From Anthoceros angustus (taxonomy: Eukaryota; Plantae; Anthocerotophyta), in assembly GCA_010909165.1 (NCBI GenBank), contig VJWM01000044.1:1364001-1428000 (forward strand): DNA of 64,000 bases. Direction: 5' to 3'. The notes below the pieces were generated by a model. That model was not told the origin of the DNA and searched no databases. It saw only the letters and a list, made by a program, of their open reading frames with translations. Below are positions 1-63,998 of the stretch, piece after piece (position 1 is the first letter of the stretch; every line of letters starts with the position of its first letter). The position numbers were made by a program, and so were the translations under genes.

Positions 1-449
1 CCTCCCCATCCCCCCTCCCGTCGTTTCGCCCTCATCTCCCCCCTCCCTTCCGGTAGCCATCTCCCCCTCAGCCACCCCACACCATGCTCGGCGCCTCGCG
101 ACCCCTCCCTCCTTGCCCTCCTCGCGTTGCCATCTGCCCGGCCCCTCCGCCCCTCCGCCTCGCCCGCCCTCCGCCTCGCCCGGCCCCTCGCCCCTCCGCT
201 CGTCCCTCGCCCGGCCCGGCCCGCCCTCGCACCCGGTTCGGAGGCGGCCCGGCCACCCTTCCTCCCACCGCGCGTGCACCCCCCCCTCCTCGTCCCTCGG
301 ACCCGGCCCGCGCCCTCGCCCCGCTCCCTCCGCCCGCCTCGCACCCGCCGGCCTCGTCCCGCCCCTCCTCCCCTCCCTCCCACCCGCCCTCGCCCCGCCC
401 TCGCCCATCCCATCCCTCCAACCTTAGCCGCCACCCCGTTCACTTTGCC

Positions 450-2930
450 TCCACTCAGCGCTCGTCATGACCATCGTCTCCCCTCCTTGCCGATGCACAC
501 CGTCTTGGCCTTCATCCTTCGCCCGCCTCCACCGCTCGCTCAGTCCATCGCCCTCAAGGCAATGGAACCCCGTCAGTTCTCTGCGGCGTCCCCATGCTTC
601 TGCGGGTGTTCGCGTACGGTGCTATCCTCCCCACGGCTGTCGTCGTTCGCGGTCCCCGGCGCAGCGATTCACTACTTGGAGGCGGTCGGGTTCGGCCGGG
701 CGATCCACTTGTTGTGGCTTTCAACGCCGTGGTTTGCGAATCGACATCCGTATGTCACATTATTCCGCCTTCACGCCCGGTTTCACGAGATGAATGGCAT
801 GCCTTATTCACTTGGGCGGTCGATTCGGGATGATAGGCAACGACCCCATGCAGAAGGACATTGATGCACCCGTCCTTTCAAATCCACGACACAATGTTCT
901 CTCAAATGTCCCCACCCCACCATTTTCCCTCGACTTTCCACCCCACAACTCTCGGTGATAGGAGCGATGGTGTGCACGTTGAAACGAAACGAGACTCTTT
1001 GTACCAAGCAGCCCCGAACACTAGGGAATTTGGGCTCCCATATCTTGCTTGATGCTCGAGGATGGCGTGGCGCGGCAACCTCCTCTTGACAAAAGCTCAG
1101 CCTTCTCCGTACAACACATATGCCTCCGGTTGTCAAGTAGAAAAGGCAACCGACATTGCGGATCGGCGGCACCCGTCCTCGCCTCCGGCGGGCAATTACC
1201 ATCCGCCGCGCCGCCGCCCGCCCCGGCCCCTCGCCCCTCCTCAACCAACCGTTCTCTGCCGTCCCCATGCTGCGGGTGTTCGCGTGCTGGTGCTATCCTC
1301 CCCACGGCTGTCGTCTTGTTCTGCGGTCCCCGGCGCAGCGATTCACTACTTGGGCGGCAGGCGGGTTCGACCGGGCGATCCACTTGTTGTGGCTTTCAAC
1401 GCCGTGGTTTGCGAATCGACATCCGTATGTCACATTATTCCGCCTTCACGGCGCGGCAATTGTTTCACGAGATGAATGGCATGCCTTATTCACTTGGGCG
1501 GTCGATTCGGGATGATAGGCAACGACCCCATGCCGAAGGACATTGATGCACCTTCGTCCTTTCCACAAATCCACGACACAATGTTCTCTCAAATGTCCCC
1601 ACCATTTTCCCTCGCTTTCCACCCCACAACTCTCGGTGATAGGAGCGATGGTGTGTGCACGTTGAAGAAACGAGACTCTTTGTACCAAGCCCCGAACACT
1701 AGGGAATTTGGGCTCCCATATCTGTGATGCTCGAGGATGGCGTGGCGGACTGCAACGCCTCCTCTTGACAAAAGCTCACAGCCTTCTCCGGTACAACACA
1801 TATGCCTCCGGTTGTCAAGAAAAGGCAACCGACATTGCGGCGGCACCCGTCCTCGCCTCCGGCGGGCAATTACCATCCGGCCACCCGATCGGCTGCGAGC
1901 CGCCGCCCAGCAGCCCATCTCGTCCACCCGGTCCACATCTATGCGGAACCCGTCGCGGTCCATACGTATGCACCCGCATCACACATCCCCACTCCACCAG
2001 CGCGCCTTTGCGTTCTGCGCGCATGCTCGCTCATTTACCATGCATGGCACTCAGCTGCGAGCGGTGCATCGTCCACGACCGTCGCATTGTACACGTGGCT
2101 GCCGAGATCGAACCCAGCCACGTACACCTGGTCGACCATCGTCACCAAGCACAGCATGACTTCCGTTGCATCGGCCTCACCACACCACCATTGCAGCACT
2201 GTTCTGAACGCGGCGGCCAGCTCCATCGCCTTCCGCATCCCCTTGTCCTTCCGCGTTGGACCCGCACCAACCCACCAATCCGCCGTTGCTGGAGGCTCCT
2301 TGTTCCTCGCAGGCCTCCGCAATTGAAACGCGTCCATGTGCTGGAATTGGTATCCTCGGTGCATGTGCTGCAACCCCTGCTCGTCCACAATCTGCATTGC
2401 CCACCTCTCATCCGGGGCATCCTCCACTTGCATGGTTCCATCCGCCGCGCACCAAAACCACCACGCCTCAATCCGCAGCCCTTGGCTCCTCCAATCTGCC
2501 CTCCAAGATGTGCTGGTGCATGTCCCCAGTCCATCCCCTTGCCAGCCGTCCCCGTATGTCGTCCGGTAAGCGGTCCGCCAACACTGCGCATGAACGCCCA
2601 ATTACATCGCCTTCTTGTTCGGCGGTCATCCACGCGCTATGCCCGCCACCCGCCTTGCCCTCCTCCTCCCACGCCCCATGTACCTCCTGCGTTCGCGTCA
2701 CGCATCCGTCGCGCTTTGCTGTGGCCACGCGCAAAACCAGCGAGTAGCCATCGCCGCCTCGTGGCTTCATTCCCCGCTGTGAATAACTGCTATCCACCCC
2801 CCTGCCGACACTTTGCCCCTCTCCCACGTCCACGCCCCCCTGTCACAGGACTCTCACACGCACTTCACCCGCCCCCGAATTCAGTGCACGCGGGCCTCTA
2901 CCCACAGGGATTCCTCGACTTCTGATGTGT
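450..2930 (-). pseudogene. Frameshifted divergent HECT-like E3 ligase gene B (N-lobe plus N-terminal region; the C-lobe would fall in the C-rich patch at 1-450)
   Basis: Stitched minus-strand frames give FRIDVDRVDEMG (~1950), CTGEGCELLSRGGV...GSPNSLVF (~1790-1700), GKMVGWGHLREHCVVDL (~925-880) and ELTGFHCLEGDGL (~575-540). These resemble the HECT pre-domain strand, GEEGxDxGG, GxxxGxAI...VVDL and F..GF motifs, in the right order and roughly the right spacing. An open stretch at 2035-2601 lies upstream in the same orientation. Confidence 0.45.
590..1878. repeat. Tandem duplication, two copies of ~673 bp
   Basis: ccccatgc...caattaccatccg runs 590-1205 and again 1263-1878. The copies differ mainly by small indels. 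Confidence 0.9.
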
Positions 2931-3059
2931 CGCCCTCAGGCGTCGTTGCGAACGGCGCCCCTGTTCTCTCAGATGACGCGGCCATGGTTCCACGATTTAC
3001 AAAACTTCGAGTCAGCCTGCGTGCTTGAGTCTTCTGCACCGGCCAGTAGTGCAACTTCC

Positions 3060-3680
3060 CTCCTGCGCCGCCTCCAGCCAACACTCCTCCCCTTCCCCCA
3101 ACCTCCCGCCCCCACCCGCCCCGCCTCACCGCCCGCCCGCCCCACCCGCCCCGCCACCCGCCTTGCCCTCCTCCTCCCACGGCCCCTGCTTCCGCCCCGC
3201 CACGCCCGCCGCCCCGCGCCCGCCCCGCCCGGCGCCCGCCCCGCCCCGCCCGCCGCCCGCCCCCTCCCGGGGCGTCACTCCCCGCCGGCCACCCGCCCCA
3301 CCCGCCACCCCGCCGCCCCGCCGCCGCCGCGCCCGCCGCCCCGCCGCCACCGCCCCGCGCCCCCGCGCCCAGCACGCCCACTCCGCACACTCGCTTGCCG
3401 CACACCTGCCTCCGCACGGCCCGTTCCCGCCCGGCCCGGCCACGCTTCCGCCCGCCCGGCGCCCCGCTCCCGCTCCCGCTCCCAGGCCCCCTCCCGGGGC
3501 GTCACCGTCCGCCCGCCGACCCGCCGACCCGCCCCCGCCCCGCCGCCGCCCCGCGCCCGCCCCGCCCGCCCCGCCCGCCGCCCGCCGCCGCCCCGCCCGC
3601 CCCGCCCGCCCGCCCCGCCACGCGGCGCCCCGCGTCACGCCCCGCCGCCCCGCGCCCCGCGCCCCGCGCCCGGCTCGGTA
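3060..3680. repeat. C/G-only low-complexity patch (A/T-depleted mosaic of neighbouring sequence)
   Basis: Almost no A or T. Contains gcccgccacccgccttgccctcctcctcccacg, also found at ~2641, and cctccgcac-ggcccgttcccg, also found at ~4166 and ~4910. Confidence 0.8.
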
Positions 3681-5830
3681 TGTTCGCTCCTCCCCGCGAG
3701 CACGGCAGGTGGTCGGGAGATGCCATATCTTCCTTCTGTTGTCTTGGTGGAGCGGATAGGAGGAAATAATTTGCCTCGCGTGGACAATACACAACTGTCC
3801 GTCTGAAGCCATGCATGCCCAAAACTGAACTGAACATTGCTTGACAACAGGGAAGCGTGGCACATTTCGAAAACAGGACGTGGGGACACCCATCACCCAT
3901 ACCGCACCGACCTCGCCAATTCCCTACAATCGTTCCGGCAAGTAGGCTCTGACATGCCATACAATGTTGTGAGAAATGGCGGTGACCACCCTCGCACATA
4001 GTGTCCTGAGTCATACAAGGGAAGTAGCAATGTCCCGCCGCACGTCATGGCCGTGGGAAGCTGGCTGCCGTCTTCAATGGCACTTGGAACACCATAATTG
4101 GCGCCGCCGCCAAAATACACGCGTCCGTTATGAAGGTGAAAAGTTTAGCTCTCTGCAAAAAGATGCCTCCGCACCGGCCCGTTCCCGCCCGGCCCGCCCG
4201 GCCACGCTTCGCCCCGGCGCCCCGCTCCCCGCCCGGCGCTCCCGCTCCCCGCCCCCTCCCGGGGCGTCACCGTCCGCCCGGCCCGCCCGCCACCCGCCGG
4301 CCCGCCCGCCCCGCCCGCCCGCCCGCCCGCCCCGCCCGCCCCGCCCGCCCCGCGCCGCCGCCCCGCCCCGCGCCCCGCGCCCGGCCCGCCACCGCCGCGC
4401 CCGCCCCGCCCCGCCGCCGCCCCGCGCCCCGCGCCCAGCAACTCTGGTGTGTTCGCTCCTCCTGCGGCCGAGCCGGCGGTGGTGGAGATGCCATATCTTC
4501 CTTACATTGTCTTGGTGGGCGGATGGGAGGAAATAATTTGCCTCACGTGGGGACAATAGTCGATGCGAAGCCATGCATGCCCAAGGCGTTGCTTGACAAC
4601 GAGGCGTGGCACATTTCAAAGCAGGGTGGGACACCCATCACCCATACCGCACCGACCTCGCCAATTCCTACAATCGTTCGGCAAGTAGGCTCTGACATGC
4701 CATACTGTGTTGTGAGAAATGGCGGTGACCACCCTCGCACATAGTGTCCTGAGTCATACAAGGGAAGTAGCAATGTCCCGCCGCACGTCATGGCCGTGGG
4801 AAGCTGGCTGCCGTCTTCAATGGCACTTGGAACACCATAATTGGCGCCGCCGCCAAAATACACGCGTCCGTTATGAAGGTGAAAAGTTTAGCTCTCTGCA
4901 AAAAGATGCCTCCGCACCGGCCCGTTCCCGCCCGGCCCGCCCGGCCACGCTTCGCCCGGCGCCCCGCTCCCCGCCCGGCGCTCCCGCTCCCCGCCCCCTC
5001 CCGGGCGTCACCGTCCGCCCGGCCCGCCCGCCACCCGCCGGCCCGCCCGCCCCGCCCGCCCGCCCGCCCGCCCCGCCCGCCCCGCCCGCCCCGCGCCGCC
5101 GCCCCGCCCCGCGCCCCGCGCCCGGCCCGCCACCGCCGCGCCCGCCCCGCCCGCCGCCCCGCGCCCCGCGCCCAGCAACTCTGGTGTGTTCGCTCCTCCT
5201 GCGGCCGAGCCGGCGGTGGTGGAGATGCCATATCTTCCTTACATTGTCTTGGTGGGCGGATGGGAGGAAATAATTTGCCTCACGTGGGGACAATAGTCGA
5301 TGCGAAGCCATGCATGCCCAAGGCGTTGCTTGACAACGAGGCGTGGCACATTTCAAAGCAGGGTGGGACACCCATCACCCATACCGCACCGACCTCGCCA
5401 ATTCCTACAATCGTTCGGCAAGTAGGCTCTGACATGCCATACTGTGTTGTGAGAAATGGCGGTGACCACCCTCGCACATAGTGTCCTCGAGTCATACAAG
5501 GGAAGTAGCAATGTCCACGTCACGTGGCCGTGGGAAGCTGCCCTTCCGTCTTCAATGGCACTTGGAACACCATAATTGGCGCCCCGTCGCCAAAATACAC
5601 GCGGACCGTTATGAAGGTGAAAAGTTTAGCTCTCTCCGCAAAAGACAGCCTCCGCACCGTCCCTACGAACATGCTCTTCAGCTCCTCAGAGCATGCCTCA
5701 AAAGTAATGGCGTTAATGAAGTCATCCGCCCTGCATCCTTGAGCGCCGGAGAAAAAAAAACTGACCACTTCGATAGACAACGTGTTCACAATCGCCAGCA
5801 GCGCCCTCGCGTCCAAGCTATGCACCACTA
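3680..5830. repeat. Three tandem ~740 bp units, each carrying the HECT C-terminal coding segment
   Basis: The block tgtgagaaatggcggtgaccacc...gaaaagtttagctctc recurs at ~3969, ~4711 and ~5449. Flanking sequence is shared, and C/G patches sit at 4170-4437 and 4915-5175. Confidence 0.9.
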
Positions 5831-6560
5831 ACCTGAACCCGTCCCCAACAAGCCCTCCAACATGCAAGCACTTTTAAATACTCCGCCGCCCCTTTCTGCA
5901 CCAAGCTCACCTCCATGCCGAGTCATGCCCCGTCAAGTCGCAAAATGTCCAAAAAACTCCGGATCCCCTGCAGTGATGAGGGCAACAGCCTCCTTGATGG
6001 CCGCATGTTGACGGTCAGCACTAGCCCAGGCCGCCTTTTTCAGCATCGATATCACACCCATCAAATGAGGGTAACAAGCTTTCATGTCCGCCTTGAAGGC
6101 TTTTTTCATGAAAGCCGACCCCGGCGCATCTTGCCACACCTTGTGAACACCGCCCACCTGGCTCCCAAGGGCGGTGTCAGGCTACCACCCGGGCATGACA
6201 CACTGACGCCGGTCGCAAGCACCATGTACACGAGGTAGCCAAAGCGGGCCTTCAAATCAAGGAGGTGCGTTAGAATGAAAGGATGGCATGTGCGGAAATA
6301 GGGAAGGTTGATGGTTACCATGAACATTACACACAAACGCCTTACCATGTATTCGCCAAACGCGACATGGACTTCCCTTCTTGAGGTGATGCTGCGTCTC
6401 GAGCCGGGATGGTCCTTGCCTCGAACACGCAGTTCATGAACATGGGATTCTCGCGTGCCGCCATGCCTCCCGATGCGGCCGAGTCGGGCCACCACCACGC
6501 CTCTCGCCTCGTGCAAAAGAACCCCCATGCCTCGCGGAGTATGAGACCGTGAACCGAGGG
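5380..6560 (-). pseudogene. Frameshifted divergent HECT-domain E3 ubiquitin ligase gene A
   Basis: Minus-strand pieces in order: RFGYLVYMVLATG (~6245), VGDGFRLVV (~5845), NTLSIEVVSFFFSG..DDFINAITFE, RRLSFAERAKLFTFIT, QLPTA(M)TCGGTLLLPLYDSRTLCARVVTAIS. These match HECT consensus elements (FxGRxxG, F..GF, ELELLxG, EERxKLLxFVTG, LPxAHTC...LPxYxS). No introns are evident. Confidence 0.7.
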
Positions 6561-6573
6561 AAGAGCGCCGGCC

Positions 6574-8065
6574 GCCATGCTCTCCAGCAGTTCATACAGT
6601 GCGCCGCACTCACTTCCAGCCTCCACCTGCGACCTCCAGCCAGTCAAGAAAGTAGCCGTGCCTGGCGAACACGCAGGCCTGGCATATGCACAACCGGAAA
6701 TGGAGCCGCGGCTCTTACCTTCAGCACAGGCGCCTCTTACAAAGGCGATGCTGCTGTTTGTGGATGGGTTGGAGCGTGCTGTGTGTGAGCGCGAACCGGC
6801 GCATAGCGGAGTTGGCTGCATCGTGGGCCTCTTGCGCCACTTCCAGGCTGAGGGCTTCAAACTCTTGCTCACATGCAGAGCCGCTCCTTTCCGACCTGGC
6901 GGACTCTGTGACCCAATCGCGGTGACTGTCGTGTAGGCGTAGCAACTCCTCTTCGTCAAGGGAGTGCCGCAGGTTGGTTGAGGCCCACGTCTCCAGCAAG
7001 TCTTCAGGCTCTATCGCCCCGAGATCCAGGCCCGGGTCTATGTCTCGAGCCTGGGGAGCCTCGCAGCGATGTCCAGGTCGGAAGCTCTATTGTCCCGACA
7101 TCGTAAAGCTCCAACCCGACACCGAGCGCACCAATCCCCTTCCGTGTCTATCCCATGTGCTGCTTTCTCCATTATCGCGTGGGCGTCAACAACGCCGCGT
7201 GGTCCGGTTCCCACCTTCGGCACTCCCGATCTTCGCCTCCCGCAAGATGGCGAAGAACATTTCGCCTCGCGCGAGCATTCCGTTTCACGACGGAAGATGG
7301 CGGCTTTCTTCGCATCCTCCGTGATAACCGGGCATCGCCATGCTCTGAGCAGTTCATACGGTGCGCCGCACTCACTTCCGCCTCCACTGCGACCTCCAGG
7401 CGGTCAAAGTAGCCGTGCTTGGCGAACACGCAGGCATGGCATATCTGAGAACGAATGCAGCGGCTCTTACCTTCAACGTCGCCTCTTACAAAGCGATCTG
7501 CTGTTTGTGGATGGGTTGGGCGTGTGTGTGTGTGAGCGCGCATAGCGGAGTTCGCATCGTGGGCCTCTTGCGCCACTTCGGTGGCTTCAAACTCTTGCTC
7601 ACATGCTTGGCGCTCCTTTCCGACTGGCGAGACTCACCAATCGCGTGTGGATCGTGTAGGCGTAGCAACTCCTCTTCGTCAAGGGAGTGGCGGAGGTTGG
7701 TAGAGGCCCAAGTCTCCAGCAAGTCTTGAGCTCTATCGCCCGAGGTCCAGGCCGGGTCTATGTCTTCGAAAGCTTGAGCCTCGCGGCCGGGGCGATGTCC
7801 AGGTCGAAGCTATCTATTGTCCCGACATCGTAAAGCTCCAACCCGCAAACAGGTCGCACCAATCCCCGTGTCTATCCCATGTGCTGTGCCTTTCTCCATT
7901 ATCGCGTGGGACGTCAACAACGCGTGGTCCGGGTTCCCACCTTGGCACTCCCGATCTTCGCCTCCCGCAAGATGGCGAAGAACATTTTCGCCTCTCGCGC
8001 TCGAGCATTCCGTTTCACGCACCGAAGATGGCTGGCAGCTTTCTTCGCATCCTCCAGGATAACCG
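6574..8065. repeat. Tandem duplication, two copies of ~763 bp
   Basis: gccatgctct...cagttcatac starts at 6574 and 7337. Both copies end in ttcttcgcatcctcc...gataaccg. Confidence 0.9.
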
Positions 8066-8074
8066 AAGCAGACT

Positions 8075-8810
8075 GCCATGCCGCCACAAGCCGCTCGTAC
8101 GTCCGGGCAATGGACGCCGGCGGCGGAAAGGCCGCGTTCACCGTTCCGCCTGCGCGGGGTGTTGGGGTGAGCGGCCGCTCACCCCGCACACCCCGAGCGG
8201 AGGGCGTCGCCGTCCTTTCTTCCGCCCAGCGCTCATTTCCCGTGCACTGCCCTCCCGCAATGCATTGAGAGCCCCCCAGGTCCGCGATGTCGCCCTTGAT
8301 GCCACACAGTCGGGCGCCGCCAACGCTCCGCATCCCCAACCATGTCCGCTGCCCACCGTGACACCGTCCACGTCGCATCCTCTTCCCGAGAACGCACCTC
8401 TTCGTCTTCCAACACGACTTTTGGCGGTAGTTCGGAGCATGTCGGCGTCATCCGGGATAACGAAGCGGCGCCATGCCGCCACAAGCCGCTAAATGCGTCG
8501 GGCAATGGGCCGGCGGAAAGGCCGCGTTCACCGTTCCGCTGCGGTGTTGGGGTGAGCGCTCACCCAGCGGGCGTCGCCGTCCTTTCTTCCGCCCGCTCAT
8601 TTCCGTGCGCCTCCCGCAATGCATTGAGAGCCCCGGTCCGTGATGTCGCCCTTGATGCCACACAGTCGGCGCGCCAGCGTGCATCGCCCGAACCATGTCC
8701 GTCGCTCCACCGTGACACCGTCCCGTCGCATCCTCTTCCGGCGAGCGCACCTCTTCGTCTTCCAACACGCCGACTTTTGGCGGTAGTTCGGAGCATGTCG
8801 GCGTCATCGG
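8075..8810. repeat. Tandem duplication, two copies of ~395 bp
   Basis: gccatgccgccacaagccgct starts at ~8075 and ~8470. Both copies end in catgtcggcgtcatc. Confidence 0.9.
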
Positions 8811-10930
8811 GATCTGGGATCCCACATATAACGCCCGCAAAACGTTAGCGCTCTCGGATGCGGCCTGGAGGGAAGAGGAGTGGCTCGTCTGCGGAGGACG
8901 GCAGGGCACCGCGGCTTGCACCTTCCGATTTCGCCGATGAAGCGGCCAGGCCCAAAGAGGCTGCGGGCAAGGCGGAAGAGAATCGCCACGTCGACCAGCC
9001 GTACCGGCCAGCTGCCTAATCGAACCATCATACCTCCCCATGGCAACCGGACGCAACCGACGGCAGCAATCCGCAACTCAATCCGCGACAAACCGCCTCT
9101 CCCCATCACCGCTTGTCCTAAGTGGATGCCCTCGTATATGCGCTGGAACCGTGATCTTCAACTTCTTCATGTGCACGCGACCATGCGCGCCTTGTAGACG
9201 CCATCCCCTTTCCGCCTCCCCACGCTGAGACCATTATCGGGTGATTCCGACGTCGTGGAATGTTTCCGCCGCGGACCGTTGCCTCTTCCGCACTTGGGCG
9301 AAGGTGCGTTCTGCGCTTCCCTGGGAGGTTCCTACCATGACCACCTTGGGAAGTAGACGCTAGGCTAGCCGGAGGACCGCCAGACGGCTGGTGTCGCACA
9401 CCCGCGGGCCCTGCGTTCCACGTCTAGCGCAAGTCTGCGGAGGCCGTCGAAGAAGCACAGGCACGAAGGAGGGCGTCCCGATGGGGGTTACATTGGAAAA
9501 CATTGTCGTCATCGTCGTGGACCCAATCCTCCAAGATGTCGCCATCGCAATCGCACCTCATTCAATCTGCGGCGCTCGGGCCTTTCGTCGGTGGCCATGC
9601 CATCAAGAAGATTGCACCGAAATTGGAAATGTCGCGTGAACTGCCCGTGAAGAGAGATGCATACGGGCGCGAGAAGAATGCCGATCTTCCGATGTCATAT
9701 ATCAAACCCTTTTACCTTAGGGCTGCGGATCGCCGTTGCCCGCATGCACACTCTTCGCACGCAGAGAGAGGTCACGCCATTACGTAATCGCCAAATTTTC
9801 TCATCCCGCTTTTCGGATATGCAATTGGGCGGTATATGCCGATGGGAACATGTGCCTGTTTTAAAGGTTTCACCGCCGGCGACGCGCCGCTTGCCGCCTC
9901 CCAAGCAAAAGCGGGTGGCGAGAGGTCATTACGCAATGAGTGAGGAGAGCTGCAATGGATGGGAGGCTCCAGCGCGCCGGGTTCGCCCCAGCCCACACCG
10001 CTGCACCGCAATGCAGAACAAAGCGCCCATGGAAGTCAACAATGGACGGCGGGCGCTGGCGACGGCACCGCCATTTCGTCATCTCCGAATATGGGAAATG
10101 CCATCTGTTCTGTGCAAAACACTGCATGTACCCGAACGCATGCATATATACCGAGTTAGTCCCTAGCCTTCGGCAAAAAAATGCCGGCTTTCAGGTTTGA
10201 TTTTTTATAACCATCGCACAAGGCAAATTTGTCAGCAGTTTCAGGTTGCCCTGGCCTTCGTCACAAACGGGATCGGGTGAATAGCTGGCCAGTATTTCTG
10301 TATCACCATCCTTGGGTTTTGGTGTACCAGAAGAACAGAATAACAGCCAATTGTTTCAAGTCCAACGTGGAAGGGAGGAAATTTGGATGACAGGAAAAAA
10401 TGGGAAAAATGCGACACGCCTCTATCCCTCTACAGTGATGCATGATGCATACGTGGACGACGGTGATATGGTGCATATATAGACATATATTTTGTGCATG
10501 CCTATATGCGCATGTCCATATATGTATGCACACCTCGCATATATACAGTATGACATAAAAGTCTATATCCTTGGCCTATGAAGGAACTTTAAGATGCATG
10601 ACAACTTGTTAAGTTTTTCCACATTCCTTGGTCTTTGGGAAGGTGGGTATGAAATAAATGTCTATATATGCAAGAAGAAGTGAACGCAGTGGCACCAACC
10701 GCCTCTTTCCTTCAGTATGGCAGGTTTTCCATCAATCGGGGACAAACGTCATATGCCTTTCCCGAAGGAACCTTTTCTACAATGCATGTCAAGTTCTTCT
10801 CCGGGTGTTTCCGCCTCTCCCCTTGGTCTTGGCAAACTGTCGAACAACATGTTGGTTTCTCCCATTCCTCCTGCATGTATAGGCATATATTTCATATATG
10901 TGTCTATGTCTGTATTGCATATTTTCGCAT

Positions 10931-12010
10931 GTGACATGTTATGTACATGAATGATTGAAAACCCTCCTTGGCCTTTGGTAGAAGTTCTTACAGTTGTTCC
11001 ATGCGACAAAGTTCCTTGGCCTATGGCGAAGGAACTTTGGAGTACATGGAACAACTTGCCTCCTTTTTTTTCCGTTTCTTTCATGTGACATGTTATGTAC
11101 ATGAATGATTGAAAACCCTCCTTGGCCTTTGGTACAAGTGAGACGGCATGCCTTGGTCTTTGAAAGGAAGTTAAATAATAAAAGTCTATCTTTGGAAGAG
11201 GGTGAACTTTTTACATGATGGTGCAAAAGTTGGCTTCCGCTTTTTCCCAAGGAACAACACATGGCAAGTTGTTCCATGCAACGGACAAAGTTCCTTGGCC
11301 TATGGCGAAGGAACTTTGGCCGATGCATGGAACAACTGCCTCCTTTTTCCCCCGAAGTTTCTTTCGCATGTGACATGTTATGTACATGAATGATTGAAAA
11401 CCCTCCTTGGCCTTTGGTACAAGTGAGGCGGCATGCCTTGGTCTTTGAAAGGAAGTTAAATAATAAAAGTCTATAAATCTGGAAGAGGGTGAACTTTTAC
11501 ATGATGGTGCAAAAGTTGGCTTCCGCTTTTTCCCAAGGAACAACTGGGCAAGTTGTTCCATGCAAGTTCCTTGGCCTATGGCGAAGGAACTTTGGCGATG
11601 CATGGAACAACTGCCTTTTTCCCAAGTTTCTTTCGCATGTGACATGTTATGTACATGAATGATTGAAAACCCTCCTTGGCCTTTGGAACAAGTGAGACGG
11701 CATGCCTTGGTCTTTGAAAGGAAGTTAAATAACAAAAGTCTATATATGCTGGAGGAGGGTGAACTTTTTACATGATGGTGCAAAAGTTGGCTTCAGCTTT
11801 TTCCCAAGGAACAACTTGCGACATGGCAGTTGTTCCATGTACCGGACAAAGTTCCTTGGCCTATGGCGAAGGAACTTTGGCCAGATGCATGGAACAACTT
11901 GCCTCCTTTTTCCCCGATGTTTCTTTCCCATATATGACATGTTATTTACATGAATGATTGAAAACCTCCTGGCCTTTGGTAGAAGTGACCGCATGCCTTG
12001 GTCTTTGAAA
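10931..12010. repeat. Tandem array of ~270-295 bp units, each containing a ~62-72 bp hairpin
   Basis: gtgacatgttatgtacatgaatgattg recurs at ~10931, 11086, 11370, 11640 and 11935. The inverted repeat gttgttccatg...aaagttcctt-ggcctatggcg-aaggaacttt...catggaacaac occurs at 10992-11056, 11267-11337, 11551-11612 and 11828-11899. Confidence 0.9.
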
Positions 12011-13254: not shown

Positions 13255-15350
13255 GGGAGGGCACCGCCTCCCCATGGCGATAGGCGGGCGCCTCCCCATG
13301 GCGATGGAGGCGGCAAATTGGGACTGCGAAATGGGCGGCCCGAATCGGGCCATGGCAGCCAGAGACAACGGCAGACCTCATTGCGAAATAGGAACCCCAG
13401 GTTGCGAGGACACGCGGAGTCGCCAACGTCGACACCGAGGCAGCCAGCCAGGAAGTGCATCGCAATTGGAAAGTAGGGAGCGTAGAAGGGCGCGGAAGGG
13501 GGGGAGTGAAGAAAAAAGGGCACCTCGGGCGTGGAAGGGCGAAACGCGATGGAGGAGGAGCGGATCGCGGTGGTGGCGGCAAGCGGGGAGGGCGGAGGCG
13601 ACGCGGACGCGGGAGCCATGGTGGAGGCCACGCTCCCTATTCCGCTGCCGCTGACGATGGCGGTGGCAGGCATTGGGGGCGAGCCATGGCGGGCGCCTCC
13701 CCATGGCGGGAGGCGGGCGGGGCGGCGGCCCAGGCGGGGGAGGCGAGGGGCAGGGCGCCCTCCCCATGGCGATGGGCGGCGGCGATGGGCGGGGCGGCGG
13801 CAGGCGGCAGGCGGGGAGAGGCACTGCCTCCCCATGGAGAAGGAGGCGGGGCGAGGCGGCGCCTCCCCGATGGAGGCGGCAGGCGGGGCCCCATGCAGGG
13901 GGGAGGGCACCGTGCCCTCCCCATGGCGATGGAGGCGGAGGCGGGGAGGCCGAGGCGCCCGCCCTCCAAGGAAAGGGGCCGTGGCCTCCGGCGATGGAGG
14001 CGGCAGGGGCGGGCGCGGGGAGGCGCCTCCGCCTCCCCATGGAGAAGGAGGCGGGGCGAGGCGCCGCCGATGGAGGCGGGTTGCCTCCCCATGGCGGCGG
14101 CAGGGGAGGGCACTGTGCCTCCCCATGGCGATGGAGGCGGGCGGGAGGCGAGGCGCCGCCGAGGCCGAGCTCGGGCATGGCGGTGGAGGCGGGGGCCTGT
14201 GCAGTGGGCAGGCGGGGAGGGCACCGCCTCCCCATGGCGATGGAGGCGGGCGGGAGGCAGGCGCCCGCCCTCGAAGGAAAGGGGCAGCTGGCCTCTCGGG
14301 CGAGGCGGAGGCAGCGGGGCGGCGATGGAGGCGGGGGAGGCACTCGCCTCCCCATGGCGATGGAGGCGGGGGAGGCGAGGCGCCCGCCTCGAAGGAAAGG
14401 GGCCGTGGCCTCCCGGCGCGGAGGCGGGGACCCAGGGCGAGCAGCGGGGAGGGCGCCTCCCCATGGTGATGGAGGAGGCGGTGGGCTCGGCGGAGGAGCC
14501 ATGGCGGCGGAGGAGCGGGAGGGGCGGTTGCCCTCCCACAGCGATGGCGGGGCGAGGCGCCTCCCAGCGATGGAGGAGGAGGAGGAGGCGGAGCATGGCG
14601 CCGAGGAGGAAGGCAACCCCGCCTTTGGGGACGGGGTCGTTGAGGACGGCGAGGCGATTACCGCCGCCCGAGGCCGAGGGGAGGAGGGATGGCGGCAGGC
14701 CTCACGCCGCCGCGCCCGAGCCGGAGGCCGAGCTCGGGCATGGCGGTGGCGGCGGCGCCTCCGCCGCCGCCATGCCCGAGCCGGAGGTGGAGCATGGTGG
14801 CGGCGAGCGATGATCGCCGCCGCCGAGGCCGACGGAGGGCCTAGCGATGGCGAGGCGGGGATGCGGAAGGCGGATGGGGGCGACGCCGCCGCCATGCCCG
14901 AGCGGAGGCGAGCCATGGCGGCGGGGCGGCGATCGCAGGAGTGGAGTGGGCGCCATCCGGTTGAGGAAGGCTTATGGGAGGAATAACCAGTTCCATCGGT
15001 GGCGGCATCTCGGCGTGGGCGAGCGCCATGGCGATAGGCGGGGCGAGGCTCGGGAGGCGGGGAGGAGGAGCGGAGGCGGCGCGAGCTCACTGGTGGAGGG
15101 AGCATCCGGCACACTGTAGGAGGAGGAGGAGGAGGAGGAGGGGGGAGCAACGCACTGACGGCGGGGGAGCGGAGGCCATGTCGGAAGAAGAAGGAGAGCG
15201 AGTGCGCCCAACCCCAACTCATGGAGGCGAGCACAAGGGGAGGCGCGACTACAGTCGGACACGTGTCCGCGGGAAGCGCGGGCGGCGGGTGCCTCCGACG
15301 CCCAATGCCCGGACGCCCCTGGAGGAGGCGGGCGCCTCCCCATGGAGAAG
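13255..15350. repeat. GC-rich satellite/minisatellite built on a (G)CCTCCCCATGG(CGATGGAGGCGG) motif, with a ~120 bp higher-order unit
   Basis: More than a dozen ctccccatgg copies lie between ~13268 and ~15340. Units of ~120 bp containing aaggaaaggggc recur at ~13905, ~14215 and ~14335. Confidence 0.85.
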
Positions 15351-16430
15351 GAGAGCGATGAACATGGAATGCTCGGCCGTCAGGCCATGGAGGCACAATT
15401 AAGGTTCTCCGCAGATGAAGCGCATGGAGGACGAGGGAAGTAGGCGGCCGTCATCCCTTGTGCTCGAGTTGCATCACCAGTAGGTTTTGCATAGGGGCGA
15501 AGCATGCGCCTTAGGAAGGCAGAGGAGATAGGGTTGGATGCTAGCCGCAATTTTGCGATGTGTGCGGTGGACATCCTTTTTGATCAATGCACCCCTTCAT
15601 AAAATTTCGGCTCTTGCGCCTATCCGTTCTTGGCGAGGTTGTTGGGTGGCGGTGGTGGTGGGTTCTTGCCGCCATGGCGGCGTGTTTGTGCCGACCATTG
15701 TGGTGAATATGTATGCCAAGGGTGGCGATTGGAGGACGGCCAGGAGTGTTTCATAGACTTGGTCGAGGATGTGGTTACCTAGACTTGCATAATAGGAGGG
15801 AATTCACCACGTGTGCGTGATGCCCTTCATGTATACCGTGATATGGAAGAATAAGGCATGGGTCTACCCAATTGGCCACCCATCCCTCTTCCACCGTGGA
15901 GGTGGATCCGCTAGCAGGCCGCAACGCATACCCTAAACCCTACAAACAAGAATCCATTGTCCCTAGATAAGAAGACACGGACACGCGCGGCGTGTGCGGG
16001 GTTCGCAATGGGCGTGCCCTCGCCGTCATTGCCTTGCAAGCCCATGGCCGGGCCGTTTAAGGGCAACCACATTGCGTGGCTCGCGGGCGGGTTAGGATTT
16101 GCTTATGGATAGCATCAAAGAAAACTTAATCGCAGGAGGAAGTGTGGAAAACTTGAAAACATAGTTTCGGTCCGGCTCTTTGTTTTCAAAGTTGGAAGGA
16201 CAAAACATTTAAACCAAACTTAGGGTTTGGACTGAAAGTGTGTGTCCCCTTTGGTGCTTGGCAGCTCTTGGTTAGGCGCCAAAGCGGCCATGTGGGCATG
16301 TGCTCAAAGAAACCGTCTGGAATGTAGGGTATATTCCTCAAGATCCCCACGCCTTGCATGGGTTTCGCGAAAAAAAAAATGTCCCATCCCCTCTGTCCCC
16401 TTTGGTATGCCATACTTATGTCAAAGGTTA

Positions 16431-16722
16431 TGAAAAGTTAGATTATCAAAGTCTATTAAAAATAAATTTTAATCTATCAGAAAAAATATAATGTGAGAAT
16501 AAACATTGAAGCTAGAGGATGGATAATGAGGTTATTATTGAAAAAGTTTGTGAATGCGTTCATGGAGGAAAAAAAATGAAAAGTTAGATTATCAAAGTCT
16601 ATTAAAAATAAATTTTAATCTATCAGAAAAAATATAATGTGAGAATAAACATTGAAGCTAGAGGATGGATAATGAGGTTATTATTGAAAAAGTTTGTGAA
16701 TGCGTTCATGGAGGAAAAAAAA
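16431..16722. repeat. Near-perfect tandem duplication, 146 bp unit
   Basis: tgaaaagttagattatc...catggaggaaaaaaaa starts at 16431 and 16577. Confidence 0.95.
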
Positions 16723-19700: not shown

Positions 19701-20461
19701 ACTTGTCCTGTGCTCCTACACTGTCCATCAATTACAGTAACCTGCACGCCCTTGCTCGACCTAAACAGCGTGCAAGAGCTTCCTTTCCGAACGCTCCTTC
19801 CTGTTCCTGCAAGAGGTGTTAGGGTTTAGGGCGGGCACGTGACGGTGAAGAAGACGAGGTGCAATACTGTTGAGGTATCAACAATATGAAACTCAAAAGG
19901 TCTGTCCTGGTCCCGGTCCCGAGACGTGCAGCCAGCCAGCGTCATGCGCAGTCCGAGTCGTGACGCGTGGATGTTGCTGTTGTTGCTTTCTTTCCTTTCT
20001 TCCCTCCCTCGAGTGGCGGCAGGAAGTGCGCGGGGAGAAGCGCGGCGCGGAACATGGAGGCGTTGAGAGAGCAAGGCGGACGGATGCATTTTTGGGAGCA
20101 AGTTAGGCGAGTGGGTGCAGGGGAAACGACAGGGCAGCAAGAATCTGGTGACAAACGGATGGCCTCATTTAGCTTAAGTCAAAGGAATCTTGTCGGTGGA
20201 GTTGGTCATTCCATGGCGTCCTGGCTCCTTCTCCCCGTCCCGTGCCCGCGCAAGGCTGCGGTGTTGCGGCCTGGCGGGAGGCGTTGCCGGGCTGCAGGGC
20301 CTCGGCCTCGGCCTCGGCCTCGGCCACGCCCCCTCCTCCTCCTCCCTGGGCCCAGCGTCGGACCTGGGCCCCTCCCGTCCCCGCGCCAGGAAGGAATTGC
20401 GCCCCCGCCTCCCCGCACTCCCGCACTCCAATCGCACCCCGATCGCTTCCCGGCCGCAGCC

Positions 20462-21939
20462 ATGGAGGAGCCGGCGGCGCTCACGGACCACCACGGCTTC
20501 TACTCCGACCTCTTCGCGCCCTCGGACGGGGGTCCTTCCTGGAGGCCTTCCCGGGCATGCATCTGGAGGAGGACCTCTGGGCGGACGTGCTGGACGGGGG
20601 GCAGCCCGGGCTGCGCTCCGTGACCGAGATGGAGGCCCCGGAGCCGCCCGAGCCCGAGGCCGCCGCCAGGGAGGCTTCCGGGTCCCCGCCCTCGGCCGGG
20701 TCGGGGTCCGGGAAGCGGCGGGATGGCCGGCAGGGGCAGGGGCAGGCGCAGGGGAAGGGGAAGGAGCGGGAGAAGGAAAGGGACAGGGAGCGGGAGAAGG
20801 AGAGCCGGTGGGCCGAGCAGCTGCTGAACCAGTGCGCGGCGGCCATAGCCGGGAACAATGCGGTGCGGACGCAGCACCTAATGTGGGTGCTGAATGATCT
20901 GGCCAGCTTTACCGGAGATGCGAACCAGCGCCTGGCGGCGTACGGGCTGAAGGCGCTCTTCTGCCGGGTGACGGGGGCGGGGGAGGCAACGTCCGCGAGC
21001 TACTACAACGGGCTGGAGGGGTTCAATTCGCTCACCCCGAAGGCGGTGCATCGGGCGTTGTTGAAGTTCCAGGATGTGAGCCCCTGGCACCAGCTGGGTC
21101 ACGCGGTGGGGAACGGGGCGCTGCTGGAGGCCATGGAGGGGCAGCACCGGGTGCACGTGGTGGACATCGGGGTGAGCTTGGGGACGCAGTGGCCGACGCT
21201 CATGGAGGCGCTGGCGACCCGGGCGGCGGGCCCGCCGACGTTGTTGCGCATCACCTTGGTGATGGACCAGGGCGTGCCGTCCGCGTCGTCCGAGTTCCTG
21301 CTCTGCCTCGAGAGGTTCGCCAAGTTCATGGGCCTGCAGGTGGAGATCAACACGGTGATCGGGCCGCTGCTGGCGCTGAGCCAGGCCGCGCTGGGGTTGC
21401 GGGAGCAGGAGGCGCTGGCCGTGTGCGCGCAGTTCCGGCTGCACGCGCTGAGCGAGGAGGCCGTGTGCGGGCCCTCGGCTAGGGACTCGTTCCTCGGGGT
21501 TTTGCGCTCGCTGCGGCCTCTGGTGATGGTGCTCAGCGAGAACGACTGCCCGCACCTCGCGCCCGAGTTTGCTGCCAGGTTTCCGCATGTGGCGTCGTTT
21601 TTCTGGCGGTTCTTCGACTCCAACGCTGCGTCGTATAAGGGCAAGGCCAGTGAGGAGCGGCAGATCGTGGAGTACGAGGCCGGGATGATGATGCTCAACG
21701 CCGTCGCCTGCGACGGGCTCACCAGGATCGAGCGCAACGAGCCCCACGCCGGCTGGGTGGCCAGGATGCACCGGGCTGCCTTCGCGCCCGCCGCTCTCAG
21801 CGAGGACGTCCTGGATAATGCAAGGGCTGTTCTCAGGAAATACGACTCGCAGTGGGACCTGCTCCTCGACATGGACTGCGCCGTGCTCTTGTGGAAGAAC
21901 CAGCCCGTCACCTTCTGCTCCGTCTGGACCTGCTCTTGA
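20462..21939 (+). CDS. NSP1: GRAS transcription factor, NSP1-like (SHR/NSP1 clade), intronless
   Basis: WAEQLLNQCAAAI, GDANQRLAAYGLKAL, HVVDIGVSLGTQWPTLMEAL (VHIID), FFDS and C-terminal SVW (SAW). The in-frame ATG is at 20557. The likely true ATG at 20462 needs one extra G in the run at ~20528-20532. The symbol rests on motif recognition only. Confidence 0.85.
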
Positions 21940-25553: not shown

Positions 25554-26643
25554 TTAGAAATCCAGCCCTTGCTCACCCACCACCTCAACAACTGGCTCTT
25601 CCTGTTCCTGTGCAGGTACTACCAGCTTCTCATGCAGCCAATGCCTGAGAGTGGTGACAGCATCGTCCAGGTCGGCATCTTCGTCCACGGACTTGGGCCG
25701 ATGGGCAAACGCATGGCCTCTGCCTGTGTAGACCTTCGCCACCGACCCGGGCACAGCTTGCTCCAGCTGGCGCACAACCTCCACAGGGCACAGGGGATCA
25801 CCATCCCCCGCGATGAGCAGTAGAGGGATCCGTATCCGGGCGGCCAGGGCCGAGTCGAACCTGGTCCCGTAGAAGAAAGCGGCGGCCCCGAATCTTCCCT
25901 GCTCGTCTCTCGCCAGGGTCTCGATCAGCCGGCCCCCGCCGAAGCAGAAGCCAACAAGAGCGAGCTTGTCCGGCTTGTCGCTACCCCCGGACAGCTCCTG
26001 GTTCAGCCAGTTGGTGGCGGCGTCTATGTCCTCCTCCACCTGCTCCCGCGGGTGCAGGCTCCGCCAGTCCTCGTACTCGGACTTGTCCCGCTCTTCCGAC
26101 CAGGGCACGCCGCGGAACAGGTCCGGCAGCAGAACGTTGTAGCCGAAACACGCCAGCTCGTTCACGAACGCCCGTGTGTCGGTGTCCTGGTGTCCAAACA
26201 CATCCGAGAGCACCACCACCCCGAGCCCGTTGTTGTTCTTGAGTGCCTGCACGAAGAACGCCCCTATCCGACCGATCTTCACCTCCGACCCGCTCACCAG
26301 CTCACACTCCTCGTCCGCTTCCATATCCTGCTCCTTCTCCTCTACCTGCGCCCTGGGCCGCCACCTTCTCCTCACCTCTGCAGACCGCGCGTGCCTTCAT
26401 GAGCAAGATGCCTACACTGGCAGTGAATTAATGCACGGTGTGCCAAGAGGACATACCAGGCTGAGAGGACTCAACTTGGTGAATGTTTCTGTTTGGCCCG
26501 CTGCGGAGATGCAGTGTCGAGGTGGAGAGGGAAGAGCGGCGGCCACGGGAATATGGCCCGACCAGTGTCCCACGTGCCGCCAAGCCTCTAGGCAGAGAGG
26601 CCGGCACACAACAGTAGCTCGGGAGCTTAATCAAAGTAGCCAT
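25554..26643 (-). CDS. Dienelactone hydrolase family alpha/beta hydrolase, probably plastid-targeted; exons 26643-26457 and 26377-25554
   Basis: Nucleophile elbow GFCFGG, IAGDGDP, and GRGHAFAHRP with the catalytic His. Exon 1 resembles a Ser/Arg-rich transit peptide and is joined by a phase-1 GT-AG intron. Confidence 0.9.
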
Positions 26644-30544: not shown

Positions 30545-31671
30545 GTCCGCTCATCACCCTTTTAACCCCAACCCTACCAGCGCTCATCCCAGACAAAACC
30601 TGAGACTCTGGGTGAGTCCTATTCTAAAAAGAAAACGGAGACCTCCAGGGGACCTCCCCGGGACCTAACTTCCCTAGAAGCTCAGGAAAGAGAATCCGCT
30701 CTCTCAGAGCGAGTTCCTGCGCGTCGATTCCTTTCTGGTCCGATATGGTACCATACCATTTCCATGTTGGTAAGTAGTAGAGATGATTAGGTGCTCATTT
30801 TTTACACCAGCTCTCCTTTCCTTTTCGATCCGCCTTATAAGCGCTTCTTGAGTCCATCTTCTGCCCACTGGAAGGCTTCGATTATGCCAAAGCCAACATC
30901 CGCTTCGCCCCTTGCATTACTTGGAAGGGGGCCTTCTCTCCACGGCCCGATCGCCCGACTCTCTTGCCATTGCCTCACTTAGGGCGACTGAACCTTATCT
31001 ATTTTTTAAGGTAGTGATATTTGAAAGCCAATTCAGTTCCAGCTAAAGTACTTATCACCAAAACTAAAAGCGGATCAAAGTATTGGTAAGTGGCTTTGCA
31101 TATGGCTAAGTGAGTGACAGTTTCGGCTAGATGCCAAGGTTAACTTTACTTTGTGCTCATCTGGTGTTCTTTGGAAGTGGCATATCGAATAAAATATAAA
31201 TTTTTCTTAATTATTCCACAGCTACACTCAGAATTAAGGTAGATTAAGTCATTTCAAGGGATATTATTAACTATGACAACAAGAAGAAGACTGAAAAATA
31301 TTGATAGGATGACGACCAAGAAAACTAAACAAAAACAAGTAAGTACCCTGTCAGTTTAGTAGATAAAGTCTCATGACTTTGGAGTACTGAAACTTGCAAA
31401 ATAGATAGCGACGAAGAACAAAAAATACCATTAAGGTACTCTTAGTCCAATAAGATAAGACCTCACGAACTTGGAGTACTGAAAATGGCATCACACCTCG
31501 GGACCTTGGTGTACTAAAGCACACTCACCACAAGAAGAAAAAGCCCAAGTAACCTAACACCCCATGACAACTTAGAAACCAACATTTCAATCAAGCTAAT
31601 ATTTAGTAAGATAACTCATCAGGACTTTGAAGTACCCTCACAAGAAGAGAAAGCCCAAGTAACTCAACTCA

Positions 31672-31951
31672 GTATGACAGCTCCATAACCGACTTTGCAA
31701 TCAAGCTATATATGTGTACAACCGTTCGATTACGAGGGAAAAGGGCGATCTACGTAGAAAAAAGTATGACAGCTCCATAACCGACTTTGCAATCAAGCTA
31801 TATATGTGTACAACCGTTCGATCGATTACGAGGGAAAAGGGCGATCTACGTAGAAAAAAGTATGACAGCTCCATAACCGACTTTGCAATCAAGCTATATA
31901 TGTGTACAACCGTTCGATTACGAGGGAAAAGGGCGATCTACGTAGAAAAAA
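31672..31951. repeat. Three tandem copies of a 92-96 bp unit
   Basis: gtatgacagctccataacc...ctacgtagaaaaaa starts at 31672, 31764 and 31860. Copy 2 has a 4 bp insertion. Confidence 0.95.
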
Positions 31952-31980
31952 TCTCTTGAGCGAGTTTGACGATGTCGCGC

Positions 31981-32238
31981 TATGAAGGGGCATAGTTAGG
32001 TCACGGCTCAACATCAGTGGATGAAGCACAAGGCTTTAGAGTTTGGACAAGTCTACAAAAAACCTTAGGAAGGGGCATAGTTAGGTCACGGCTCAACGTC
32101 AGCGGATGAAGCACATGGCTTTAGAGTTTGGATAAGTCTACAAAAAAACTTATGAAGGGGCATAGTTAGGTCACGGCTCAACGTCAGTGGATGAAGCACA
32201 AGGCTTTAGAGTTTGGATAAGTCTACAAAAAAACTTAT
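31981..32238. repeat. Three tandem copies of an ~85 bp unit
   Basis: gaaggggcatagttaggtcacggctcaac...gtctacaaaaaa occurs three times with a few substitutions. Confidence 0.95.
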
Positions 32239-34905: not shown

Positions 34906-38137
<3,232 letters not shown>

Positions 38138-62143: not shown

Positions 62144-62287
62144 GACTACGTGGCAGATTGCTTTCGCCACTTCAAAGAGCTTTGAAAATTGAAGTGTATG
62201 TGGAGAGGTTTCTCAGACTACGTGGCAGATTGCTTTCGCCACTTCAAAGAGCTTTGAAAATTGAAGTGTATGTGGAGAGGTTTCTCA
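62144..62287. repeat. Perfect 72 bp tandem duplication
   Basis: gactacgtggcagattg...gagaggtttctca starts at 62144 and 62216. Confidence 0.95.
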
Positions 62288-62882: not shown

Positions 62883-63998
62883 CTAATGGCCTTGCTTCTC
62901 GTTCCAGTGCTGGAGAAGGTCCTTGCTAGCTTCGTAGGTCGACCAGCAGATGGCTGCGGCAGGGGTGTGGAACATCACACGTGGTCTCAAGCCCTTCCAC
63001 AGCGCCCATGTACCCTCGTGTGCTACAATCTTTCGAACAACATCCAAAATTGATGTGCTGTGAAAACGCTCCGCACCACAAACTCCCTGCATTCGCACAG
63101 CTGGTTCGTTAGGCCCAATTGCGTCCAGCTAGTCAAACAGAATTGCATCAAGAAAGGAGACCGACCGAGTGCTGGCACTTTATATGAGAGGTTAAATCTT
63201 GCAAAGTACCTGAGTTTGCAAACGTGTCTTCACAACATCCAAGGGCGTGGTGATAGCACTCGCAAGGGCTCCAGCCACCCCACCAGCCGTCATATGTGTA
63301 AATAAAGTTTCGTCATCTGACTGAGAGACAGCCTTCTTTGCTGCCTCATATGAAGCAAAATGCACAGCGGTGAACGGGATGTTCATCATGACTGTCGTCC
63401 TGTAAGATGCATAAAAGGCCCTAATACCCTCGTGCTTCAGCATCTGTCTGACGCAGTCTACAAGACCCCTGTAAGGACTTTGCTTCAGCTGCAACCTTTG
63501 CTTTACAACATCCATGGGAGTCAGAACTGCATCACTGGCTGTAGTTGCAACCGCCCCTGCCAATGCATGGGCAAAGGGATGATGGCCCTCCCTGTTACCT
63601 CCAAACTTCTCCTTGCAGACCTCATAGACTGAAAAGTAGACAGCATGTGCTGGTCCAGCTCCTAGTCCCATTGCTCCAATTCCTCTGTACAACCCTGAAG
63701 CACCCTCACTCTTCAGTATGGAAGAAAAAGCTCTCGACACTTGAGTTTTAGCACCAGGAGCGGACAAAACTTGCATGCGTGTCTTAACTGTATCAATAGG
63801 GAACATGGCCATGTGTTCCACCATTCCTGCTACAGATCCAGCGAGCATGTGCTGTTTAAACGTAACGTCATACGAAACTGGGTCTCTCCGTATTTGAGGG
63901 GATTGGTCGTCAATATCCTTCACTGCAACACCTTTGTCACCTGTATACCATTTCTGCCAACCGTTTGCCCCATTATCCTTCAGCACATCACCTTCCAT
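62883..63998 (-). CDS. Mitoferrin-like mitochondrial carrier; exons 63998-63210 and 63086-62883
   Basis: Three Px(D/E)xxKxRxQ repeats (PIDTVKTRMQ, PMDVVKQRLQ, PLDVVKTRLQ), EHMAMFP, GPAHAVYF and NIPFTAVHF. The ATG is 2 nt from the window edge, so the true start could lie outside. Confidence 0.92.

Follow-up and report, generated by a model that had tools for sequence, protein, structure and literature searches.

A probable pseudogene of a highly divergent ubiquitin ligase of the HECT type in Anthoceros angustus, with three copies of its 3' end

The window analysed here is a stretch of 64,000 nucleotides from the genome of Anthoceros angustus (assembly GCA_010909165.1, contig VJWM01000044.1, positions 1,364,001 to 1,428,000), and all positions below are counted from its first letter. 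Near its left end, on the minus strand of this land-plant nuclear DNA, lies a locus that is most probably a pseudogene, the non-functional remnant of a gene for a very divergent ubiquitin ligase of the HECT type. Sequence comparison establishes the homology of 5873-5427 to HECT C-lobes, comprising the last helices of the N-lobe and the C-lobe. A first-pass annotation, made from the letters alone, had proposed a divergent HECT domain at 5380-6560, split by several frameshifts. The C-terminal half of that domain stands, and its N-lobe half is not established. The locus is a decayed pseudogene, not a working ligase masked by frameshifts; its copy within this interval has no codon for the catalytic Cys, and as it is, it cannot encode an enzyme and has no enzymatic function. 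A HECT domain is understood here as a bilobed fold, about 350 residues long, in which the N-lobe binds the E2 and precedes the C-lobe; the catalytic Cys sits in an LPxAxTC loop, some 30-35 residues before the C-terminus.

The evidence centres on p3, a 117-codon open stretch (5523-5873, minus strand) that covers the end of the N-lobe and most of the C-lobe. It belongs to copy A, one of three copies of the 3' end of the gene, and runs from GDGF through FAERAKLFTFIT to QLPTAT. The Pfam HECT profile (PF00632, gathering score 23.9 bits) gives sub-threshold matches to single pieces: 13.2 bits for 5520-5867 (E 0.068, profile positions 176-241), 16.4 bits for the tail piece 4543-4863 and 17.3 bits for the tail piece 3893-4120. 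These matches are colinear, positions 176-241 being followed by 263-285. A profile made of window sequence only, the open reading frame (ORF) at 5520-5867 plus the tail of copy B, was searched against 1.84 billion protein representatives and returned seven matches at E <= 1e-3. Just two of the seven span about 100 profile positions: P0002 (271 residues, E 3.5e-5; Logan SRR33208241, locus L001) and P0004 (198 residues, E 5.7e-5; Logan SRR18067572, locus L002), both of which pass the Pfam HECT threshold, with 31.6 and 43.4 bits. The others (P0001, P0003, P0005, P0006 and P0007) match over short stretches only and were set aside as spurious; domain scans of the last four gave unrelated domains (TIR, RHS) or, for P0006 and P0007, nothing significant beyond weak sub-threshold matches.

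Searches in the reverse direction lead to the same place. With P0002 and P0004 as tblastn queries against the whole 64 kb, the best match lies at 5870-5523 (E 4e-7). A family hidden Markov model (HMM) built from P0002 and P0004 alone, and containing no window sequence, scores p3 at 47.5 bits (E 1.5e-13). When copy A is read across its breaks, each of them marked by an X and none stitched with real residues, the score is 57.5 bits (E 1.4e-16) over model positions 150-273 of 275, down to the C-terminal YG. A significant profile match, which the first-pass annotation had made the touchstone of its proposal, is thus present for the C-terminal half. Frameshift-aware alignment of the C-halves with a custom aligner gives z values of 20 and 15 against 200 shuffled queries. 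The match to P0002 and P0004 is unlikely to be a compositional artefact, because none of the shuffled queries reached half of the observed score. When the window-only profile was compared with the PDB, HUWE1 came out on top (E 0.0049), and 16 of the 19 matches at E <= 10 were HECT ligases.

These results bear on the idea that GC-rich non-coding DNA happens to spell out HECT-like motifs. Such a coincidence would fit the facts that individual pieces stay below the Pfam threshold, that long open frames are common at such a GC content and that the N-terminal motifs are without statistical support. It is hard to square with the E values of 1.5e-13 to 1.4e-16 against a model free of window sequence, with the z values of 15-20, and with the predominance of HECT ligases among the PDB matches. 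As an account of the locus, chance is scarcely credible: it is refuted for 5873-5427, and for 5874-6573 it is possible.

The order and spacing of the elements of the HECT C-lobe (PF00632) are the same in the window. They comprise GF, an acidic-patch helix (ADDF), FxERAKLxxFxT, a beta strand, LPTAxTC, LxLPxY and a C-terminal aromatic-Gly pair. The nearest solved structures to the window profile are HUWE1 and Tom1 (e.g. 7nh1, 9cmr), followed by UBR5 and AREL1, and the string ERAKL occurs literally in the window, HUWE1 and Tom1. The differences from canonical HECT domains are considerable. The window has FITxRVY where these have FVTGSxRVP, M instead of H before TC, and GG instead of FN after the Cys, and identity to them is so low that none of the single pieces passes Pfam.

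The catalytic site and C-terminal tail of copy A (5427-5522, minus strand), as read from a DNA alignment of the three tails together with their translations, are broken. A gain of 2 bp after LPTA creates TGA at 5522-5520, and the chain reads LPTAT and then stops. A second frame gives VTWTLLLPLYDS (5523-5488), V-T-W-T-LLLPLYDS, in which a Trp codon (5517-5515) stands in the place of the Cys and two Gly codons are gone, a 6-bp loss leaving T-W-T against T-C-G-G-T in copies B and C. A single extra base right after LPLYDS changes the frame again, and a third frame follows as GHYVRGWSPPFLTTQYGMSE (5486-5427). The catalytic Cys of the LPxAxTC loop is therefore absent from copy A, and no continuous ORF exists, since its C-half needs three frames and is interrupted by a stop.

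Several of the landmarks named in the first-pass annotation lie where it had put them, all on the minus strand: RFGYLVYMV at 6246-6220, GDGF at 5846-5835 ((V)GDGF at 5849-5835) and LPLYDS at 5505-5488. Its distances are also right, with 400 nt (133 codons) from 6246 to 5846 and 726 nt (242 codons) from 6246 to 5520, and the frame interruptions that it described are borne out, as no frame is open through the region and 5874-6573 holds 4 to 10 stops per frame. Around the catalytic position that it placed near 5520 lie the TGA just described and the Trp codon where the Cys belongs. The motif PTAMTC, which it reported in 5380-6560, is absent there and occurs solely at 4800-4783 and 4057-4040, in the two tail duplicates. 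The tail that it called short after LPLYDS extends for about 20 further codons (GHYVRGWSPPFLTTQYG, 5486-5427) that align with the C-termini of both relatives. It had also suggested an assay of the corrected ORF; given that the copy inside the interval is without the Cys and the locus is decayed, such an assay would probe a reconstruction and not the locus.

Could the frame changes be introns or assembly errors in an intact, working HECT gene? The region is GC-rich, repetitive and hard to assemble, and it includes a minus-strand homopolymer (10 T, about 5750-5760). Yet the C-half aligns with the relatives in a way that leaves no room for introns, the stop lies in frame, the Cys codon has been lost through the 6-bp gap, and copies B and C share indels that differ from those of copy A. 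Assembly errors are an unlikely source of the frame breaks because ORFs of 270-565 codons are intact elsewhere in the window, even at 63-68% GC, including one of 565 codons at 68% GC. An intact gene is thus very improbable.

The 3' end of the pseudogene is part of a unit of about 740 bp that occurs three times in tandem (3407-5663), as seen in self-blastn, in the repeat families D3, D4 and D7 and in TRF output. Each unit takes in the final ~50 codons of the gene, from inside the codons for GTVRRLSF onward, together with 3' flank of about 300 bp and a simple repeat rich in GC. In self-blastn, 3407-4923 is 91% identical to 4164-5663, and 3407-4180 is 84% identical to 4907-5663. The simple repeat is of the CCCGC type on the plus strand (4927-5169 and 4184-4436); in copy C its tract is longer, running from 3672 down to 3105, past the array limit at 3407. 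Copy A (5280-5700) is continuous with the gene body (5664-6573), which is single-copy within the 64 kb, and copies B and C abut the simple repeat on their upstream side, detached from the body.

Tail copy B (4546-4923, minus strand) is 93.5% identical to copy A over 370 nt and matches Pfam HECT at E 0.0076 (positions 263-285). It carries ERAKLFTFITD in one frame and VYFGGGANYGVPSAIEDGSQLPTAMTCGGTLLLPLYDS...QYG in another, with a Cys codon at 4785-4783, and the DNA alignment shows three indels relative to copy A. Tail copy C (3805-4180, minus strand; Pfam HECT E 0.0039) shares 87% identity with copy A and, over 279 nt, 99% with copy B; its frame breaks are those of copy B, and its Cys codon lies at 4042-4040. 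Both duplicates retain LPTAMTC and LPTAMTCGGTLLLPLYDS, out of frame with ERAKLFTFIT through the three shared indels. The first-pass annotation had used the frame that gives YFGGGANYGVPSAIEDGS, found in copies B and C. The frame of copy A may instead be the ancestral one, because the HMM of the relatives aligns continuously through its reading GAPIMVFQVPLKTEGQLPTA; short-peptide scores do not decide between the two frames. As the three tails differ by indels, they evolve without coding constraint.

Upstream of p3 the case for a HECT domain is less firm. The single-copy remainder at 6250-6573 (minus strand) holds GLILREAWGFF, which had been taken as the start of the N-lobe; it has no Pfam match and no similarity to the upstream exon of L001 (z -1.3). 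The segment 5874-6249 (minus strand), from ARFGYLVYMVLATG to just before GDGF, is a possible N-lobe remnant and requires at least three frame changes to be read through. Over 5874-6573, Pfam finds nothing in the N-terminal pieces, and tblastn and tblastx find nothing convincing, an extra tblastx segment of 22 residues at 5951-5886 being probably noise. When a frameshift-aware aligner compares this interval locally with the N-terminal parts of the relatives, z is about 0. The ORF of L001 includes, upstream of its called start, the peptide LFGGMMFQIVSTGLQV, which resembles RFGYLVYMVLATGVSV in the window. From this motif to (E/D)GF there are 129 residues in L001 and 133 codons in the window, and the two are colinear. 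A global frameshift-aware alignment anchored on the LFGG..REGFF segment of L001 reaches z 2.7, a score attained by 2 of 300 shuffles; this signal is suggestive only, because the anchors were picked after the match had been seen. These sequence likenesses suggest that 5874-6249 may be a more heavily decayed N-lobe. The canonical NEDD4-type spacing claimed in the first-pass annotation shares this standing: its distances are correct, but it depends on RFGYLVYMV being an N-lobe motif, which that post hoc z does not establish, and the comparison is at most plausible.

Some results weigh against the pseudogene interpretation. No uninterrupted piece reaches the Pfam HECT gathering score (13-17 bits against 23.9), and the N-lobe is not demonstrated. 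The structure check proposed in the first-pass annotation did not bring out a HECT template: AlphaFold, run on a window piece of 115 residues with a five-row alignment, gave a predicted local distance difference test score (pLDDT) of 51, and Foldseek returned noise. Among the other searches, phmmer against the PDB with single window pieces found nothing relevant. A word-index protein search with the 115-residue piece gave no match within its length window of 63-201 residues, which excludes full-length kin.

P0002 and P0004, the nearest detectable kin of the relic, are orphan HECT fragments that come from public read assemblies. Over 74-130 residues their identity to the window is about 29-33%, and they have in common with it F(I/V)TD-x-x-Y instead of FVTGS, LPTA/PQA-x-TC and the C-terminal YG. 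A word-index protein search with a four-sequence family alignment retrieved only these two again. Pfam sees HECT solely in their C-terminal ~130 residues, their N-terminal parts being divergent too; as it is blind to the N-lobe in P0002 and in the L001 ORF, the family is divergent there throughout. The relatives differ from the window in having open reading frames with the Cys in frame, where the relic is broken, and in lying on AT-richer contigs (40-43% GC) without visible tandem amplification nearby. L001 seemingly holds a fuller gene at 515-1772 (plus strand), with an upstream ORF bearing the N-lobe-like motif GGPTARF and a main ORF that reaches 39 codons upstream of its called start. The AlphaFold model of its 310-residue ORF has a pLDDT of 45 overall and 68-82 over the last ~100 residues. 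The top 50 PDB matches of this model are all HECT domains, with a template-modelling (TM) score of about 0.6 against isolated C-lobes. The model supports the family assignment of the relative, not the N-lobe of the window.

Downstream of the L001 gene, on the opposite strand (3024-3310), there is a sub-threshold zf-RVT-like relic (E 5e-5) and a Ty3-like peptide, GFIQPSKSPYGA, of a kind typical of plant retroelements. Together they suggest that L001 (43% GC) is a plant contig.

The main rival to a pseudogene left in place is that a repetitive or mobile element carries the HECT fragment as cargo or has amplified it, which would make it a captured gene fragment or a satellite-like array. The surroundings give some reason to consider it. 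Four independent two- or three-copy arrays between 576 and 8813 box in the relic: besides the triplication at 3407-5663, these are two-copy tandem duplications at 576-1879, at 6573-8065 (6573-7330 with 7336-8065) and at 8047-8813 (8047-8458 with 8445-8813). By self-blastn, the copies of the latter two are 82-84% identical. A captured fragment would also fit the fact that no more than the C-terminal half is clearly recognisable, and L001, the sole relative with flanking DNA, adjoins the zf-RVT retroelement relic. The open stretches scanned around the relic, chiefly at 6.1-10.6 kb and also at 1.7-3.8 kb, nevertheless hold no transposase, reverse transcriptase, integrase or helicase domain, nor any other protein domain or transposon protein. 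Inverted repeats of at least 60 nt are absent from 1-12 kb, and the body at 5664-6573 is single-copy. A mobile or satellite-like origin is accordingly improbable, with more in its favour than any of the other alternatives. The units of the three two-copy arrays measure about 675, 760 and 400 bp; they are 82-91% identical and hold no recognisable coding content. Among 24 stop-to-stop open stretches, mostly in the 6573-8813 area, no relevant Pfam family was found, the only two matches being weak and unrelated ones to Galaxin_repeat and Chorion_1 (E 0.006-0.009).

If the locus is a pseudogene of this kind, its history might be pictured as follows. The intact ancestral gene would have encoded a HECT ligase that took ubiquitin over from an E2, bound it as a thioester to the cysteine of LPTAxTC and transferred it to a substrate. 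After the gene had lost its function, its 3' end may have been duplicated by unequal crossing-over or by slippage during replication, in a region prone to repeats, and a breakpoint would lie within the C-lobe at about 5663. Small indels would then have built up unconstrained.

Turning to known HECT systems, UPL1 and UPL2 are the plant counterparts of HUWE1 and Tom1. The plant UPL ligases have the same type of catalytic domain as the relic and belong to the same kingdom. A recent UPL pseudogene would be expected to give strong matches to Pfam HECT and to plant UPLs, whereas the search of 1.84 billion proteins gave no plant UPL. For placing the relic among the subfamilies, some 150 residues, interrupted by breaks, can be used. 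With the bacterial HECT-like effectors SopA and NleL the relic shares no more than the general catalytic principle, a thioester-forming Cys in a domain of two lobes. Their chains are absent from all 19 PDB matches of the window-only profile and from the best 60 of 66 matches of a family profile, and the context is a plant nuclear genome; the relic is not a member of that group.

The divergence of the sequence raises the question of whether the relic descends from a gene acquired horizontally, from a giant virus, a bacterium or another donor, a descent that would account for its lying apart from the usual plant HECT groups. The extreme divergence itself would be in keeping with this, as would the fact that just two relatives, without a source name, turn up in 1.84 billion cluster representatives. 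The same can be said of the land plants in the available part of Marín (2013; PMC3712016), which show no HECT genes outside six subfamilies. P0002, P0004 and the window piece, however, found no relative in viral, metagenome or bacterial/archaeal collections, in scans that detect close kin only. The nearest solved structures are eukaryotic (HUWE1 and TOM1), and L001 looks eukaryotic and of plant type. A horizontal origin is thus quite unlikely.

The rest of the window carries several recognisable eukaryotic nuclear land-plant genes, as judged by Pfam. The clearest is a complete GRAS-domain ORF (20242-21939; Pfam E 1e-87), whose protein is an NSP1 orthologue. Its top matches, 54-56% identical, are from the lycophyte Diphasiastrum and the liverworts Marchantia and Calypogeia, and those from mosses, ferns and seed plants are farther away. 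These identities point to a non-seed land plant with few entries in protein databases, possibly a hornwort, and the DNA is not human. An exact-protein look-up held no record of this ORF. The NSP1-type transcription factor gene itself (20557-21939, plus strand) is intact and intronless, with 68% GC. Pfam also recognises a DUF26/Stress-antifung fragment, a dienelactone hydrolase, a DEAH helicase exon, a FAD_binding_1 exon and a mitochondrial carrier. Coding GC is uneven over the 64 kb, at 0.68 for NSP1, 0.63 for the dienelactone hydrolase and 0.46-0.49 for the DEAH helicase, FAD_binding_1 and mitochondrial carrier ORFs; ORFs of such uneven composition lie at 25554-26375, 35600-36817, 45786-47075 and 63192-63998. 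Across the window GC ranges from 0.36 to 0.69. Rfam and tRNA scans of the window were empty.

Repeats are also found away from the relic. An AT-richer tandem array at 10920-12010 consists of 4-5 copies of ~270-295-bp units, 85-98% identical and without a protein match. It is followed at 13400-15400 by a low-complexity block, G-rich on the plus strand, with tandem repeats of 109-119 bp and a strand skew opposite to that of the C-rich block at 1-6000. Long, spurious-looking ORFs of up to 672 codons cover both strands of this block and have no Pfam match. Perfect two-copy tandem duplications occur at 16430-16722 (146 bp) and 62144-62287 (72 bp), and two adjoining three-copy arrays of 92 bp and 85 bp, 94-95% identical, at 31671-32238. 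These small duplications suggest recent local duplication across the window.

For annotation, the proper label is that of a HECT-like pseudogene whose 3' end is present in triplicate; the locus should not be entered as a gene for a ligase. The relic is a pointer to a divergent HECT lineage that is very rare, with two detectable relatives in 1.84 billion protein clusters. Marín (2013; PMC3712016) recognises six HECT subfamilies in Viridiplantae, and in the available part of the table Physcomitrella, Selaginella, Picea, Hordeum and Zea have no genes in the 'Others' column. Tentatively, and with a probability below even, the relic, P0002 and P0004 could represent an undescribed, fast-evolving HECT lineage of non-seed plants outside the six UPL subfamilies. 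It would have an N-lobe too divergent for Pfam and a modified C-lobe signature (FITD-x-x-Y, LPTA-x-TC), and would be intact in at least one species (L001) and dead and tandemly amplified here. If this is a true plant clade, it would extend the six-subfamily picture of plant HECT ligases, a mildly novel addition, and it would be an example of a gene that arose, diverged rapidly and died within early-diverging land plants.

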